Part shown: in pieces, positions 3,501 to 10,621 of the stretch
Numbering within the stretch: the first letter of the stretch is position 1
Layout: the number at the start of each line of letters is the position of its first letter
Source: Chlorokybus atmophyticus
Lineage: Eukaryota > Plantae > Mesostigma and Chlorokybus algae
Length of the DNA stretch: 64,000 nucleotides
Direction of reading: 5' to 3'
Assembly: GCA_009103225.1 (NCBI GenBank)
Contig: RHPI01001202.1
Coordinates: 305,206-369,205 of the forward strand
Made by a program: the position numbers and the translations under genes
The notes under the pieces: model-generated
The model's database searches: none
Seen by the model: the letters and a program-made list of their open reading frames with translations, nothing else
What the model was told of the DNA's origin: nothing

Positions 3501-5084
3501 CTGGTGCTGTACGAGGCGGCCGAGTCGGATGCACGTGGCCTTCGCCTGCGGCTCAAGGAGCTCTCCATCATGGCCAACGAGATGGTGCGGTTGGTTGAGA
3601 CGGCCTCGGCGCCCATCTTTGCGGTGGATACAGCGGGAAAGCTTACGGCCTGGAATGCGAAGGTCAGCCGCCTCGCGGCCCTGCCCTTTCAAGACGCCGT
3701 TGGGAGGCACCTCGTGGCGGACATTATGGCGGATGCCAACTCTCAGGCCCGCTGCGAGCGCATGGTGCAGTTGGCGTTGCGTGGGGAGGAGGTTGCTGAC
3801 GAAGAGTTGCAGCTGCGGCGGTTTGATAGCAGTGGTTTGGGCTCGGATGCACACCTTGTGCTCAAAGTCAACACGTGCGCCACACGTAACAGCCGCGGGG
3901 AGGTGGTGGGAGTGTGCTTCGTCGGCCAGGATATGACTCAGTACCGAAGAGTACTCGATCGCTATGTGTGCCGACAAGGAGACTACACGGCACTTGTACA
4001 CAATCCCTCCCCGCTTATCCCGCCACTGTTCGGCGTTGATGCCAATGCCTGCATCAGCGAGTGGAACCTCAACATGGCCTCCCTGTCCGGCTGGGCGAAG
4101 CAGGAAGTCGAGGGGCGCCCATGCAGGTCCGTGTTTTCGCATGACGTGAACGCTTTGTGTCGGCAGCCTGACCCGGAGGTGGCGGTCCGCTTTGAAGTGG
4201 CGGTGGCGAAAGCGCTGCATACTGGCCAAGACACGGCCGCCATGTCCTTCTCGTTCAAGCCGCGTGGCAAGGATACATTAAATGTTAGGTTGACAGTGTG
4301 CGCGCGTCAAGACCGCGGGGCCACTTGTCTGCTGCAGCATGTGAGTTCTGAGCTGGAAGAGCTTATGGAGCATCAGCGAGCTGAGGAGAAGGCGTGTGCG
4401 CTGCTCGTGCGCGAGGTGGCATATCTGCGCGATCAAGTTAAGCCTCCCATAGACGGCTTGCTTGCGGCCTGCCGGTCGCTGCCGAGGGTTCTCGTGTATG
4501 ACGACCAGAGGCAAGTTGCTCAAGTGGCGGAGTCCTGCGCGGCCCAGTTGAGCATGATTACACTGGACGACGCTAATGCGGGCGGCGTTCAACCCGTTAT
4601 TGGCATCGTCGCCAAGCCCTTTGATCTTCAAGACCTCGTTAATGCGGTCATCGCGCAGGCCATGGTTGGTGCGAGCTTACGCGGGCTTCACATCTCCTCC
4701 TCAGTCACGCTGGCCGCAAAACAGATTGGTTTGGTGCTCGGCGATGCCTTGCGATTGCAACAGGTGCTGGCGGATCTTGCACGAATCGCCGTTGAGCACA
4801 CCAGGGCCGGGTACGTGGAGGTTGGAGTTGATGCCACGCCTGAGGGCCAGGCTGCTTGCGTGGTGCTGCGGGTAGCGTACACGGGAAGACCGATCGCGCG
4901 CGACCTGCACAATATGCTGGTAGATAGCAACGGCATGCTTGATCGGCGGCGCTCCTTCTCGCAGGTGTCGCTCTGCCAGCAGCTCATTGTGCTGATGGGC
5001 GGGAAAGTGTTTTATGTCAGCGAGCCCACGGCCAAGGGATACAGCTTCAATGTCCAGATGACTTTCCCCATCGCGCAGCTATGA
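580..5084 (+). CDS. PHY: Phytochrome, streptophyte type but non-canonical (NTE-nPAS-GAF-PHY-PAS-PAS-HK-related). Proposed exons 580-1092, 1738-2011, 2091-2254, 2442-5084 (~1197 aa)
   Basis: GT-AG splices join in frame: ...PLAAQ|PHGVTVVVEE...LHRIPAG|VVMDLEP...AVVEE|VRELTGYDRVMAY. The GAF has ASDIP, LRGVMGCHRQY (bilin Cys-His) and WGLIVCHH with the plant-type insert. PHY ends ELDAIHSLQL, followed by two PAS domains (LVETASAPIFAVD; NPSPLIPPLFGVD) and an HK-related tail lacking the phospho-His. Exon 1 and the start codon are less certain than the rest. Confidence 0.95.
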
Positions 5085-6899
5085 GCACTGCACAGTTTTT
5101 CCCCAACACATAGCCTTGTATATTCCCTTTGGACAGTGACATTGTCACTGTACGGTGACAGACACTGTCTGGCATTGCGCCAGACCCTAGGCGGGCATGT
5201 CCGCTGCGTGTAGCTATAAGTTATTGTTAGTGCTGTTTCTTGCGACAAGGACGCAAGTTAATTGCATGCATAGGCTTGGACCTGACTAGTTGTACCATCA
5301 ACAACAAGAGTGCCGTTCTATGATAATTTGCAGTAAAGCTAGGCTAACAATAAACGCTGCATACTTAGGTTAAGTGTACATCATGATGCAGCTGTGCTGT
5401 CACCTAGCGGTAAATCAGACAAGATAGAACTGAACTGAACTTTGTCTTGATGGTCGGACACTAGCCAATAAGAAATAGAACTACTTGCTAAACTCGTGGG
5501 GAGAAAGGCAAACAATTCGACAAAGTGAAGTACAACTTGTACTTGATTGCCATGTTGTCATATGTGAAGATGATTACTTAGTCTCTAACGCATGATAGAT
5601 CAATATTGTATTGCATGGGTGCATCAGAATTCGGCGTGTATAGCTCCCACCATCTCAATCCAATCTAATCTTGATGCAACATAGAACGCCATTTTCGGTT
5701 TGTGTGTAGCATTGCGCTCGTACAAACAAAATTAACCAACGCGATTGCGACTCACACAACCACGCATTGACACTACAAACGGCATTAAAATGTTTTGCGG
5801 CATAATGATGATGCATAGAACTGCAAACGCAAGCATAGCTTCGATATTGTTTGCATTAGGTAATGCTCATCAACCACAACCTGTGAAGGCTGGTAACGCT
5901 CTTGATCTACGCATCGCCAACTGTTGACAACACTGATATTGATATTCATATGAAGATGTATCAACCGCATCGTTACGGGCACATTGTGCTATAGACAATA
6001 TTATTCACATGGTATAGAATTTACCTTGAACAACACACAACCAATGCACAAAGCTAAGATGATTGGTGTGCACGTTGTCCTTTTAACGAATGCCAAAGCC
6101 TGAATCTGCCCATGCTCTGTCATGCGTCATATGAGGGTTTAATTCTTGAGGTTTATTCTTGCGTCGCAGTGTTAAGTCGAGTCTAGCTAAGTTGTGAAGC
6201 CCTACCTTGACCTTCATGTACGCTTTTTACTGCCTTGAAATGTGCGTGTGCGTCAAGAAAGCCATGCAGTATGGTTTGTGTGTGTATACGGTGCGCGGAC
6301 ATACGTGATGCAAATGGATATGTGCACTCTGTTGCTGCATGATCAATATGCATGCACGCAATCATCAGCATAGCACACATACAACACTATATTACACCAG
6401 GCTATGTGTGTGTGTTCAATATATGCAATGCTGTGATGTGTGTGGCATGCTGGCACGTGCCTTGTACAAACATTCTTGCTTGCTTGCTTTCTGTAGCTCA
6501 TATGCGAGTTATGCCGTTTACATACGTGTTTGAGTGATCAAAGGTTTAAGTATGAATGACATGCACTGAGCACTTCGTCAGAAGGATTATGCAGTACAAT
6601 ATAGTGTGGTGAGGAGCTGACTCACGGGAATGCCATGTACATGACTGTGAAGGCTTCATCATCAGTGGTTACCCAGCATATAGTGCTTTTCAACATAAGA
6701 GCTGCGCAAAGCAAACTCAATGACATGCGTACATGGTTGTGTAGCGTGCTGTGCTGCTCTACCTCACGGTCATGCGGACTCAAACACAACCACACACGTC
6801 ACGCACATTATATACAGCGTACGCCACAGCGACGACCTCAACTGCACAGGTGGTGCCATGCTGACGTGGTGCATGCTGCATGCAAGCTAACCCTAACCT

Positions 6900-6945
6900 T
6901 AACGTCCAAGCGATGCTGCCTGGCGGCAGCATCGCTTGGACGTTA
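6900..6945. repeat. Perfect 21-bp inverted repeat with 4-nt loop
   Basis: taacgtccaagcgatgctgcc (6900-6920), loop tggc, ggcagcatcgcttggacgtta (6925-6945). Confidence 0.95.
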
Positions 6946-8255
6946 TGGCGGTACGTTGTAAGCGACTGCAGCGTGGGCGATGGTGGCGGTGTGGGGGGAG
7001 GGAAGGGAAGGGTGTTGGTCTGCTGCTGCTGTTGCTGCTGGGGTCCAAGGGCTGGCCGCTAACCCTGCGCCATTGTCCGGATGACTGACTGGGACATTTG
7101 CATGCTTGTGTGACTAACGGGGAAGGCGAGTAGTGTAGTAGTAGTGTAAATAGTATAGCGCGGTGGTGAATTAAATAAGTTTTTGTGTTTTGGCTATGTC
7201 TGGTGGGTGAATGTCACTGTGTGTGTGGTGATGCAGGACACCTCTTGCATGCGGCATATGAGGCATAACATCCAATAACATAGTTTTTACACACGCGGCA
7301 GCGTCACGCAGCATATACCCAATGATGTGCGTGACGTGGAATGCGGCGAGTGGAACTGCACTTAGGGTATAGCAATGAAGATCACAAGCAACAAGCAAAG
7401 CACAGCAAGCAGCAGGCAGCACATGGCACGAGAAGCTATTACAGCGGTCTAGCTATGGGGTTGGTTGTCTATGTGCCAATGCAGTAGACCCCAAGGCATC
7501 GGCAAGCAGGAGAGACGGGCGCAGCAGCGCTCACCACAGCGGTAGGTAAAACAATGAAGTAGAAACCAACCAGCCCGGAGATTTGTGTTTGACTGCGTGA
7601 TTGGTGAGTGTACATAAATCTCAAGAAGCTCTAGGCATGCAATAAATGCCTTGCATTCATTGTGTAGTGACTGTACTCTTGGCTAACATGTTATGTAAAC
7701 ATGGCATGTGTGACTTTGCATGCACGAATTCCGCACTCCTTTTAGACACTTCTCATATCAGCCCTTGCTCCCCTTCTGTGCACGCGCGCGGGCCCACGGA
7801 AACATATAAATATGTGCTAACGCACTTGCTAACATGCAATTCAACTCATTGCAATAACTGGGTGGTAGGCGGCAATGACGAGTGCCGCACAACCCAACAA
7901 ACGCGGCTACATCAGGAAGGTTATCATCATCTATACAAATACCACGTATAGACGCCCAACTTATTATTGTACTTCGTCCCTTATTGGTGCGCTAATGCAC
8001 TCCTTGTTATGCAGAAGCTGGAGAACCGTGGTGGGAAGCGTATCTACATGGTATTACTGGAGAACCGTGGGCGCCACGGAAAAGGGCAAGCAAGAAGTCG
8101 CTCAAAACCATAATGGCGAGCAACAGTCTCCCTGGCAGCTATAGACTGCACCGCTAAAATGAAACAGACTGAGTGAATGCAGCGTCCACTCCACACAGCT
8201 TCGGCGCTGATGTGGGAAGTTGGGACAGCCGGCAAAGCCACAATGAGCTGCGTAC

Positions 8256-10621
8256 TTAATACAGGGGCGTGCTCCCGCAGCAGTAGTATTCAAAAAAGAC
8301 TTGCTGAAGGACTTGGACCGCAGCATCCTTGATGGCTTTCCACAGCATGGCAACGCTGTCGTCTCTAAGGTCGTATCTCAACATCTTGACACCGTCCACT
8401 TCGGTGAGCGTCATGAACACAGGGCTGCTGGCATTGATTGCAGATGCAAGGGCGTGATTGAGGTCGCTTGCCCTGATACCTTGCCATTCTGCACCCACAA
8501 GGCCGAAAGTAACAACAGACGGGCACAGATTGCTCGCTGGTATGACACGGAATCGCGGGTCAGACTCAATGTGCGCTGTCAGCTTGTCTGTCTGGACTGC
8601 GGTCAGACAGAGAGCGGATTTGCTGTCTGGCGGGGCCAAGCATGCGTACAAGCTGGCTCTGATGGCCGCGACATCCAGGGCTTGGCCAATCAGAACAAAC
8701 TGCACTTTGGGTGGGTTGCCTTGCGGCCACTCGTCTTCCACAAAGTTGAATCTGCGCCGACCACTGAGCTGCAACAGGTACCTGCTGCCCTCCGCCACAT
8801 CAAACCACAGGAAGCCCTTTGCTCTGATGACCGATGGTGGCAAGTGATGTGCGATGAATTCCTGTAAATACAACGACCGTCAGAACCGGTATCAGGGTAT
8901 CAAGGCGAGACATGTGCCAGTCAACATTGAGACAACTGTGCCACCACGAACCTGAAAGCGTGCCAACACCAGTGGTCTGGTAGCACAAAATGACATAGAG
9001 ATCAGGCCGTCTTGTTCAAGGTGGTCGCCGTGGTGCATGTCGCCTTCATCAAAACTGTCATCGTGATGCTGATGATGGTGATGTCTCTCACAGGCGTTGC
9101 TGCACATGTGGGAGGCAAGGCCCCCCTCCTGCTCTTGCCAAGTATCCATGTCTTGCAGGTGTTGCACCACGGACTCCACTTCTTCGGCATGCAGCTGTTG
9201 GTTTTTTATGCAAGCACTCTGCGTTGCGGCTGTAGCAAGTATCGCAGCTAGTGGCGCCTGTCCGTAACTGCATCTGATGACAGCCGGCTGGCCTGCTACT
9301 GTTGCGTTGGGTGCCGTGAGTATGCACCTGAGAGCGTTCTCGACCTGCATATACACACAATGTTGTTTGTATACGCAGAGATAGTGTACAACTTGCAATG
9401 ATGTCATATTGCGCTGGATGCCTTGCAAGTTAATGCTAGGTACGTTTGCTGACCTCTGTGGTGCGTCTCCATGGTAGCAGGTCGACTTTGTTAAGCAGAA
9501 TAACATCTGCGCAAGTCAACTGACTTCGTGCAGCTGCACTCCCATAACATTCAGCGGAGAATGCCTGCGAACGAATCGCTTTGAGCAAGATCCTTGCGTG
9601 TAAGTGTGGTCCCTAACTAGCAACCTATCACGCATGCTCACCTCAGAGTCAACCACTGTCACGACATTTGCCAGCCACACGTATGCACGCATTGCGGTCA
9701 TGGCAAACGTCTTGATCAGCGGGAGAGGGTCGGTTACACCGCTTGTCTCGAGCACAACATGGTCGACTGCACCGTCAGCATTCTTCAGCACCTTTTCCAC
9801 AGCTGCCTGGCAAGCATCAACCAGGTTAGGTTTGTGCCAAGAGCGCAGATCAAGCGAACAGAGTGCCGACTCCAGTGTGCAATGCTACCTTTTCAAGCAA
9901 AAGGCAACACAATACCAACCTGCAAATCAGTGTTGATGGAACAGCACACGCAGCCATTTGTCAACTGCACCATGTCGGGCAGCTTGCCATTCTCTCCTTG
10001 CACGAGAGCACCATCGATATCGACGTCTCCAAACTCGTTCACCTGCACGGAATCAAATTCGACTGAGACATATGCACATGGTGTTTCAGAACAAGTGAGG
10101 CAGTAGTTATAGGCAGCGGACAGATACATACAGCATGCCTGACTGCATGGCTGCTTACCAGGACAGCAATCCTCAAGCCAGCGCTGTTGTGCAGCAAGCG
10201 GTTAAGCACGGTTGTTTTGCCACTTCCCAGAAAACCTGAGTTATCACACGGTCAGTGTCCGCACAATGCAAAACACCTACCAGCGTTCCACCACTTCACA
10301 CAATGCAACTCAAGCAAGCGCTAATACAGCTGCAAGCTAGGGTGCGCACAATTGCGGCATCAAGGCAATTGTCCCGCACGTTTGCGAAGGTGATCAACTT
10401 TGCAAGCTTGCACTTTGGCAAAATTGAGGCCACGGTTTTCAGCACGTACCAGACAGGATGGTGAGCGGCACGGCGCTCGGGCGTGTCCTCTCAGGTGCTC
10501 CCATGGCGGCGGGTCTGTCGCTGGGGTCGTTGATGTTGCTGGCTCCCCCAACCCCCCCAACTCTGCCTGTGGCGGCAGTGTTGCGGCTAGAAGAAGCTAA
10601 CCCAACATGTTGTTCGCGCAT
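8256..10621 (-). CDS. COG0523/CobW-family (ZNG1-like) metal-chaperone GTPase with His-rich linker, CobW_C domain and ~120-aa C-terminal extension. Exons 10621-10450, 10235-10159, 10042-9920, 9806-9642, 9564-9454, 9344-8952, 8861-8256 (548 aa)
   Basis: All introns are GT-AG and phases match. Motifs: VPLTILSG|FLGSGKTT (Walker A), VNEFGDVDID, NGCVCCS (CxCC), VLETSG, LLNKVD (NKxD), ERHHHHQHHDD, VIRAKGFLWF...QFVLIGQALD. The start Met could be 10621 or a later ATG. Confidence 0.93.

Follow-up and report, generated by a model that had tools for sequence, protein, structure and literature searches.

A gene on the minus strand of a 64,000-nucleotide stretch of Chlorokybus atmophyticus DNA (contig RHPI01001202.1; the whole stretch is called the window below, and positions are counted from its first letter) raises the question of what follows the CobW_C domain of a COG0523 GTPase and what this appended part might do. 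An earlier note on this DNA had claimed that a decarboxylase-like segment continues in the same exon after CobW_C. The open frame 8259-8861 on the minus strand bears this out: it encodes CobW_C (PF07683, E 2e-12, ORF residues 3-79) and then 126 residues up to the stop, it lies in the last exon, and no joint is seen there in the transcripts. Six further exons upstream on the minus strand encode the GTPase motifs of a COG0523 protein. The gene product is the C. atmophyticus protein jgi/Chlat1/7289 (eukprot; P0001, 548 aa). The seven exons, translated exon by exon, gave consecutive segments of P0001 with 0 mismatches, and the stored P0001 sequence was used as the input for the whole-protein analyses. 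The features of the gene are listed in Table 1.

Two transcript contigs of C. atmophyticus, derived from public runs of separate studies (2013 and 2021), match the window at 100% identity. Six GT..AG introns (on the coding strand) are spliced out in both. Since both contigs skip exactly the six GT-AG segments, they originated from spliced mRNA. Both contigs cover positions 8000-8860 in one piece, from CobW_C through the tail and the stop into the 3' UTR; one of them, X1, extends approximately 210 nt past 8000 according to its record length. The earlier note had considered transcripts that end after CobW_C, but the two spliced contigs run through the tail. In a third public run, small pieces spanning the intron borders were found unspliced, and these pieces are therefore genomic DNA. 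The gene is an expressed nuclear gene of this streptophyte alga.

Table 1. Features of the decarboxylase-tailed COG0523 gene in the window
Feature	Residues	Position	Strand	Basis or remark
Whole CDS, 7 exons		8256..10621	(-)	ATG 10619-10621, stop 8256-8258
Exons		10450-10621 (coding part), 10159-10235, 9920-10042, 9642-9806, 9454-9564, 8952-9344, 8256-8861	(-)	translations compared with P0001
G3E GTPase (cobW), exons 1-6	52-220	9333..10468	(-)	Pfam PF02492, E 4.5e-48
P-loop GFLGSGKT	58-65	split by intron 1, ends at 10213	(-)	motif read
CVCC	114-117	9941-9952	(-)	motif read
LETSG	143-147	9738-9752	(-)	motif read
NKVD	204-207	9481-9492	(-)	motif read
His-rich acidic linker between GTPase and CobW_C	304-324	9021..9083	(-)	predicted disordered
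CobW_C, interrupted by intron 8862-8951	332-422	8637..8999	(-)	Pfam PF07683, E 9.8e-16
Last exon: CobW_C end, short linker, decarboxylase-type small domain, Cys-Cys tail	348-548 + stop	8256..8861	(-)	
Small domain homologous to the C-terminus of group II (aromatic amino acid) PLP decarboxylases	428-541	8280..8621	(-)	profile, AF2, Foldseek, VIA-align
Terminal Cys-Cys	C541, C542	8277..8282	(-)	invariant in 13/13 tail sequences
3' UTR		8000..8255	(-)	unbroken cover by both transcript contigs

The body of the protein carries the features by which COG0523 proteins are recognized: Walker A GxxGxGKT, Walker B/ETSG, the guanine-specificity motif NKxD, the metal-binding motif CxCC, and CobW_C placed after a His-rich linker. 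In an alignment of 75 sequences (A4), which includes 65 cyanobacterial-type relatives without a tail, C114, C116 and C117 of the CxCC motif are invariant, and so is C421 at the end of CobW_C. Judging from these motifs, residues 1-422 are a complete COG0523 (G3E-family) GTPase, for which metallochaperone activity is predicted. The Pfam domains detected in the 548-aa protein were cobW and CobW_C and nothing else; PF00282, the PLP-binding large domain with the Schiff-base lysine, was absent from P0001 and from every orthologue in the Pfam analysis. Because this large domain is missing, decarboxylase chemistry is impossible, as the earlier note had maintained. The sole solved relative by sequence was E. 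coli YjiA, whose match was confined to the GTPase domain. In the full-length AF2 model (pLDDT 74, pTM 0.73), the tail was well ordered, and pLDDT fell below 50 at residues 282-320.

The protein scored below the NCBIfam cut-offs for CobW (TIGR02475, 168.5 vs 332.1 bits), ZigA (NF038288, 157 vs 600 bits) and the YjiA type (NF008578, 120.5 vs 361 bits). Since the scores are far under these cut-offs, it belongs to COG0523 but to none of the named subfamilies. The label ZNG1, which the earlier note had attached to it, should be dropped, and the label zinc is likewise not established. The tail-less relatives that scored highest among the matches listed came from cyanobacteria; these CobW-family proteins have 335-418 aa and 38-46% identity. 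Tail-less CobW proteins of the cyanobacterial type also filled the listing of a full-length profile search. The sequence comparison suggests that the COG0523 body may have been derived from the plastid ancestor. Residues 1-50 are predicted to be disordered and are variable or missing among the orthologues: the N-terminal extension is present only in Chlorokybus and the P0005 cluster, and the Pyramimonas and Tara copies begin a few residues before the P-loop. With the extension restricted in this way, plastid targeting was rejected as unsupported.

We then come to the residues beyond CobW_C. When the tail alone was scanned, Pfam returned only GIPC1_GH2 (E 0.19), which is irrelevant, and NCBIfam returned no match. 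As a single sequence searched against the PDB, the tail gave plant TyrDC/AADC on top with marginal E values (0.05-1.3), and the matches were on the last ~100 residues of these enzymes. With a profile of 13 tails, all nine PDB matches at E <=0.01 were group II aromatic-amino-acid decarboxylases, among them Catharanthus TDC (6eew, E 1.7e-11), an Arabidopsis enzyme (6eei, E 3.2e-9), poppy TyDC (6eem, E 2.4e-7), rice TDC (6khn, E 5.8e-6) and pig DOPA decarboxylase (1js3, residues 384-476, E 7.5e-5). The matches were collinear across the whole C-terminal domain in eight of the nine, and 6liu/8x0o matched over the second half. In the same profile search, bit scores fell from plant to animal enzymes, and no bacterial chain was matched. 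A suggestion from these scores is that the donor of the small domain was a plant-type AADC. The clusters of PF00282 and PF21391 were returned by a language-model feature search with the tail, which is an independent pointer. PF00282 itself spans mostly the large domain of group II decarboxylases.

The fold of the tail was predicted by AlphaFold2 from the subfamily alignment alone, with no templates. The model (pLDDT 82, pTM 0.77) has the topology helix-strand-strand-helix-strand-strand-helix. The four-stranded antiparallel sheet and three helices of the group II small domain are found in the tail, and they speak for homology of this domain only. In the Foldseek search with the model, the first 48 of the best 50 matches were group II decarboxylases (E ~3e-6, TM 0.62-0.69). 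VIA-align gave Z 13.7 with an rmsd of 1.9 Å over 108 residues against human AADC, and Z 10-12 against the more distant fold-type-I small domains of NifS, SPL and EctB. The ESM Atlas shape search returned decarboxylase clusters only, five with PF00282 and a sixth that is a 117-aa cluster named pyridoxal-dependent decarboxylase. Among the positions that the tail and the decarboxylases have in common are DxRF (D395, R397 and F398 in pig DDC), N428 and R447. The earlier note had let its reading stand or fall with similarity to a decarboxylase small domain, and the profile, Foldseek, VIA-align and ESM Atlas results all revealed this similarity; the range 8307-8591 that it had marked (residues 438-532) lies within the small domain. 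We are thus nearly certain that the tail is a homologue of the group II decarboxylase small domain and that the fusion architecture is real.

The last helix of the tail is extended by a hydrophobic stretch that ends in Cys-Cys, with the consensus VFFxxFCCGxR. This extension lies beyond the end of the decarboxylases, which do not have the F/Y-C-C motif. Invariance across all 13 tail sequences extends to 14 positions, among them DxRF, N, R and the terminal CC. Arg509 and Asp511 of the Chlorokybus protein are invariant. A terminal Cys-Cys was found in none of the 119 tail-less cyanobacterial-type relatives examined, which do have a Cys at the end of CobW_C (the C421 equivalent). The C-termini of the orthologues read CCG, CCGIR, CCGYR, CCDFR and CCGVP, and six residues follow the CC in Chlorokybus. 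The linker between CobW_C and the tail differs in length and composition among the orthologues. The invariant Cys-Cys had not appeared in the earlier note.

To find other carriers, an exhaustive HMMER search with the tail was performed against 1.84 billion representatives. Seven true relative clusters were obtained, and the complete ones all have cobW and CobW_C upstream; no other tail carriers were found among these representatives at E < 1e-3. The same architecture is present in P0003, P0004, P0005, P0006 (Pyramimonas parkeae, MMETSP0058) and P0009, and fragments of it in P0008 and P0012. Of the carriers with a name, Chlorokybus belongs to the Streptophyta and P. parkeae to the Chlorophyta, and the remaining carrier clusters are from marine metagenomes, those looked up being from Tara Oceans. 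On a Tara Oceans scaffold of 29 kb, an intron-free copy of the fusion lies beside AP2, LRR, FUT8-type and peptidase C69 genes; the AP2, LRR and FUT8-type neighbours and the lack of introns point to a compact picoeukaryote genome. The search for the same architecture elsewhere, which the earlier note had proposed, was thus successful in P. parkeae and several uncultured marine picoeukaryotes.

Four further HMMER matches (P0002, P0007, P0010 and P0011) were rejected because they arise from repeats or low complexity. Of these, P0002 is a protein with PKD/Ig repeats, and P0007 bears the name Rap guanine nucleotide exchange factor, and its best stretch covers 22 tail residues only. Word-index searches returned only P0001 itself with the tail region of P0001, and only P0001 and P0005 with a linker-to-end profile. 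In an unrooted tree, built quickly and with long branches, the branch separating the six fusion proteins from 65 cyanobacterial-type proteins had an SH-aLRT of 99%. This split agrees with the fusion having arisen once. In the ancestor shared by the members of a small green-algal subfamily, the C-terminus of a COG0523 protein may have gained a decarboxylase small domain of ~110 residues, and a new hydrophobic helix extension with the invariant Cys-Cys would have been added after the domain gain.

As for the function, we propose that the appended domain would be a non-catalytic accessory module, which confers partner specificity on the chaperone. The earlier note had suggested that the domain may recognise clients or mediate dimerisation. 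The Cys-Cys may provide a thiolate site on the tail that takes metal from the CxCC of the GTPase or hands it on, under GTP control. In AADC, Arg447 of the small domain contacts Phe80 of loop 1, and mutation of Arg447 hampers the apo-to-holo closure (PMC8003434). In the 13-tail profile, AADC Arg447 aligns with an invariant Arg of the tail. Because Arg447 touches loop 1 and its counterpart is invariant, the tail may possess a protein-protein contact surface that faces outwards, and for the same reason a partner-docking role is favoured. Since PLP decarboxylases are not metalloenzymes, the donor domain names no metal client by itself. The family is narrow (seven clusters among 1.84 billion representatives), which counts against the proposal. 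The residues common with decarboxylases could also be kept for folding alone, and the Cys-Cys could serve for lipid attachment or as a structural element and not bind metal. Docking of a partner by the domain combined with thiolate hand-off by the Cys-Cys, for which CBP1/ZNG3 and CCS offer parallels, is put forward here only tentatively, as a plausible role. The explanation as a whole, in which an expressed COG0523 GTPase has acquired a small domain and a Cys-Cys tail with this inferred role, is in our judgement probably the best one.

Four other explanations were weighed against partner docking, together with a variant in which the client is named. The tail might stem from faulty annotation or assembly, or be a functionless relic in decay; its narrow taxonomic range speaks for this and nothing else does. 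The tail and CobW_C are in one exon and one frame, two transcript assemblies from separate studies span the tail, 14 positions are invariant between streptophyte and chlorophyte-type algae, and the fold is predicted confidently. An artefact is excluded, and the explanation taken with the relic included hardly deserves credence. The Cys-Cys after a hydrophobic helix might otherwise carry lipid, through S-acylation or a Rab-like double prenylation, and so anchor the protein to a membrane, with the small domain as a spacer. The C-termini of the orthologues given above do look like CCX/CCXXX and are preceded by aromatics, and several orthologues are without an N-terminal targeting extension and hence probably cytosolic. 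However, the six residues past the CC in Chlorokybus give no fit to prenylation motifs, Rab geranylgeranylation requires the Rab fold and REP, and Cys pairs of metallochaperones are usually metal ligands. As lipidation would also leave the conservation of a whole folded domain unexplained, we consider it very unlikely. CaaX-type prenylation was rejected, the C-termini being inconsistent across the orthologues. That the domain is a small-molecule sensor (of an aromatic amino acid, an amine or PLP), which couples metal delivery to the amino-acid status, is less likely still. The domain does come from an amino-acid-metabolising enzyme, and bacterial ZigA, linked to histidine catabolism, gives a precedent for a COG0523 protein that is connected with amino-acid pools. 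However, no pocket-forming residues were identified in the tail, and the substrate and PLP sites of group II enzymes are in the large domain and the dimer interface, outside the small domain (PMC8003434).

The domain might also act within its own protein, with no external client: it would pack on the GTPase or CobW_C, or pair two chains, and thereby gate the CxCC or the GTPase cycle. The small domain of a decarboxylase does pack on the remainder of its own chain (PMC8003434), the tail has high pLDDT in the full-length model, the overall pTM of which is 0.73, and the hydrophobic VFFxxF extension is invariant. In contrast, the surface on which the decarboxylase domain packs (the large domain and loop 1) is missing from the fusion protein, the linker that joins CobW_C to the tail is variable among the orthologues, and the tail-less cyanobacterial relatives evidently work without the module. 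An intramolecular role is accordingly judged rather unlikely. In the variant of partner docking (client mimicry, or a Rosetta-stone relationship), the domain would substitute for its counterpart in a group II decarboxylase-like protein, or compete with that counterpart, and dock on the body of the enzyme; the Cys-Cys would then hand over or withdraw a metal. We regard this variant as improbable. If it were true, early green algae would have coupled the production of aromatic amines, aldehydes or histamine-like compounds directly to their Zn (or Co/Ni) status.

The earlier note had supposed that the fusion was undescribed, and no description of this architecture was found in the full-text papers searched on COG0523/CobW with decarboxylase, fusion, algae or chloroplast. 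A survey of plant and algal COG0523 proteins treats ZNG1, ZNG2, ZCP1 and 'cluster 4' and mentions no such tail (PMC10642216). The decarboxylase-tailed COG0523 protein is a real, expressed and conserved architecture that is apparently undescribed. At present, the database annotation of the Chlorokybus protein is cobW and CobW_C only. The fusion spans lineages across the streptophyte/chlorophyte split and is a clean case in which the small domain of a PLP enzyme is reused outside a PLP enzyme. Which clients most COG0523 metallochaperones serve is the central question of this family, and extra domains are rare handles on the choice of partners.

The cyanobacterial CobW proteins (for example, those of Acaryochloris and Leptolyngbya) are like the fusion protein in the GTPase and CobW_C body and in the Cys at the CobW_C end. 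They differ in that they end soon after CobW_C, and the small domain or the terminal Cys-Cys was found in 0/119 of them. The group II small domains (AADC/DDC, plant TDC/TyDC and HDC; PDB 6eew, 6eei, 1js3 and 3rch) resemble the fusion tail in sequence, in DxRF, N and R, and in fold. Unlike these enzymes, the fusion tail is without the N-terminal and large domains and is joined to a GTPase, and it has a subfamily-specific RxD motif, a WHG insertion and the 12-residue hydrophobic Cys-Cys extension. CCS, the copper chaperone of SOD1, contains a domain homologous to part of its client enzyme, followed by a short CXC tail for the metal hand-off. The fusion is likewise a predicted metallochaperone, whose enzyme-derived domain precedes a short cysteine motif at the C-terminus. 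However, the proteins, the metal and the fold are unrelated, and CCS mimics a known client, whereas the fusion mimics an enzyme class without metal dependence.

ZNG1 and ZNG2, the zinc-regulated metalloprotein activators of eukaryotes, possess the same COG0523 architecture with CxCC and the His-rich linker, and ZNG1 has a dedicated client-docking element (PMC10642216). This element, which docks on METAP1, is N-terminal in ZNG1, whereas the Chlorokybus protein has a folded C-terminal domain, and the top tail-less relatives of the latter among the matches listed are cyanobacterial and not of the ZNG type. CBP1/ZNG3 of Chlamydomonas has cobW and CobW_C with a C-terminal WW domain, which accompanies the binding of CCM1/CIA5 (PMC12891040). 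As with the fusion protein, CBP1/ZNG3 is a green-algal, lineage-restricted COG0523 protein with an extra C-terminal domain, which in CBP1/ZNG3 is an interaction domain (PMC12891040, PMC13368412). In contrast to its WW domain, the Chlorokybus protein carries a decarboxylase-type small domain and Cys-Cys; a Pfam scan detected no WW domain in the fusion protein, and the fold of the tail is different. CBP1/ZNG3 occurs in Chlorophyceae and Trebouxiophyceae, whereas the fusion occurs in Chlorokybus, Pyramimonas and marine picoeukaryotes. The CobW-WW protein, the only algal precedent found, led straight to CCM1/CIA5, and the decarboxylase-tailed fusion is a second such handle.

The gene, which encodes a COG0523 GTPase with a decarboxylase-type small-domain tail, has two in-frame ATG codons in the region of its N-terminal extension.

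Candidate start codons and N-terminal extension of the gene
Feature	Window position	Strand
First ATG (start of the database model)	10619-10621	minus
Second in-frame ATG (Met40, shortly before the P-loop)	10502-10504	minus
Region of the N-terminal extension with both candidate ATGs	10502-10621	minus

The orthologues from Pyramimonas and the Tara Oceans metagenomes start just a few residues ahead of the P-loop. The extension of 39-50 residues is therefore lineage-specific. Disorder was predicted for it by AF2. It may serve as a targeting peptide, or the start codon may have been called too far upstream.

With three marine metagenome orthologues (P0009, P0039 and P0043), the gene calls lack the P-loop and their first residues are MGNSVGLRIGVLVNDF. 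The N-terminal break lies near the sites of introns 1 and 2 in Chlorokybus. The P-loop of these proteins is probably encoded by a separate upstream exon, which was missed by prokaryote-style gene calling.

Pieces 100% identical to sequence within window 9278-10617 were detected in a 2018 sequencing run (X5) that carries another organism label. The pieces are unspliced and span the intron borders; they are genomic DNA of this strain, or of one nearly identical to it, filed under a different name. Downstream of the gene (window 5000-8000), the G+C content falls to 0.44-0.49 and only short ORFs are present (the longest, 108 aa). The 3′ UTR of the gene reaches into this region, down to about 7790.

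The match of the tail to P0002 (ENA metagenome, 2880 aa; E 1.6e-9) is false. P0002 is a giant PKD/Ig-repeat protein, and the E-value arose because eight weak repeat matches were summed. The case illustrates that multi-stretch E-values from phmmer are misleading for repeat proteins.

The last 25 residues of the tail-less, mostly cyanobacterial-type relatives (P0066-P0184) were inspected. In nearly all of them, a conserved Cys closes CobW_C, often as CxC (for example, ...CVCxPS...GKGFGK), at the position of C421 in the algal protein. The Cys or CxC may represent a thiol motif at the C-terminus of that COG0523 branch which has gone unremarked.
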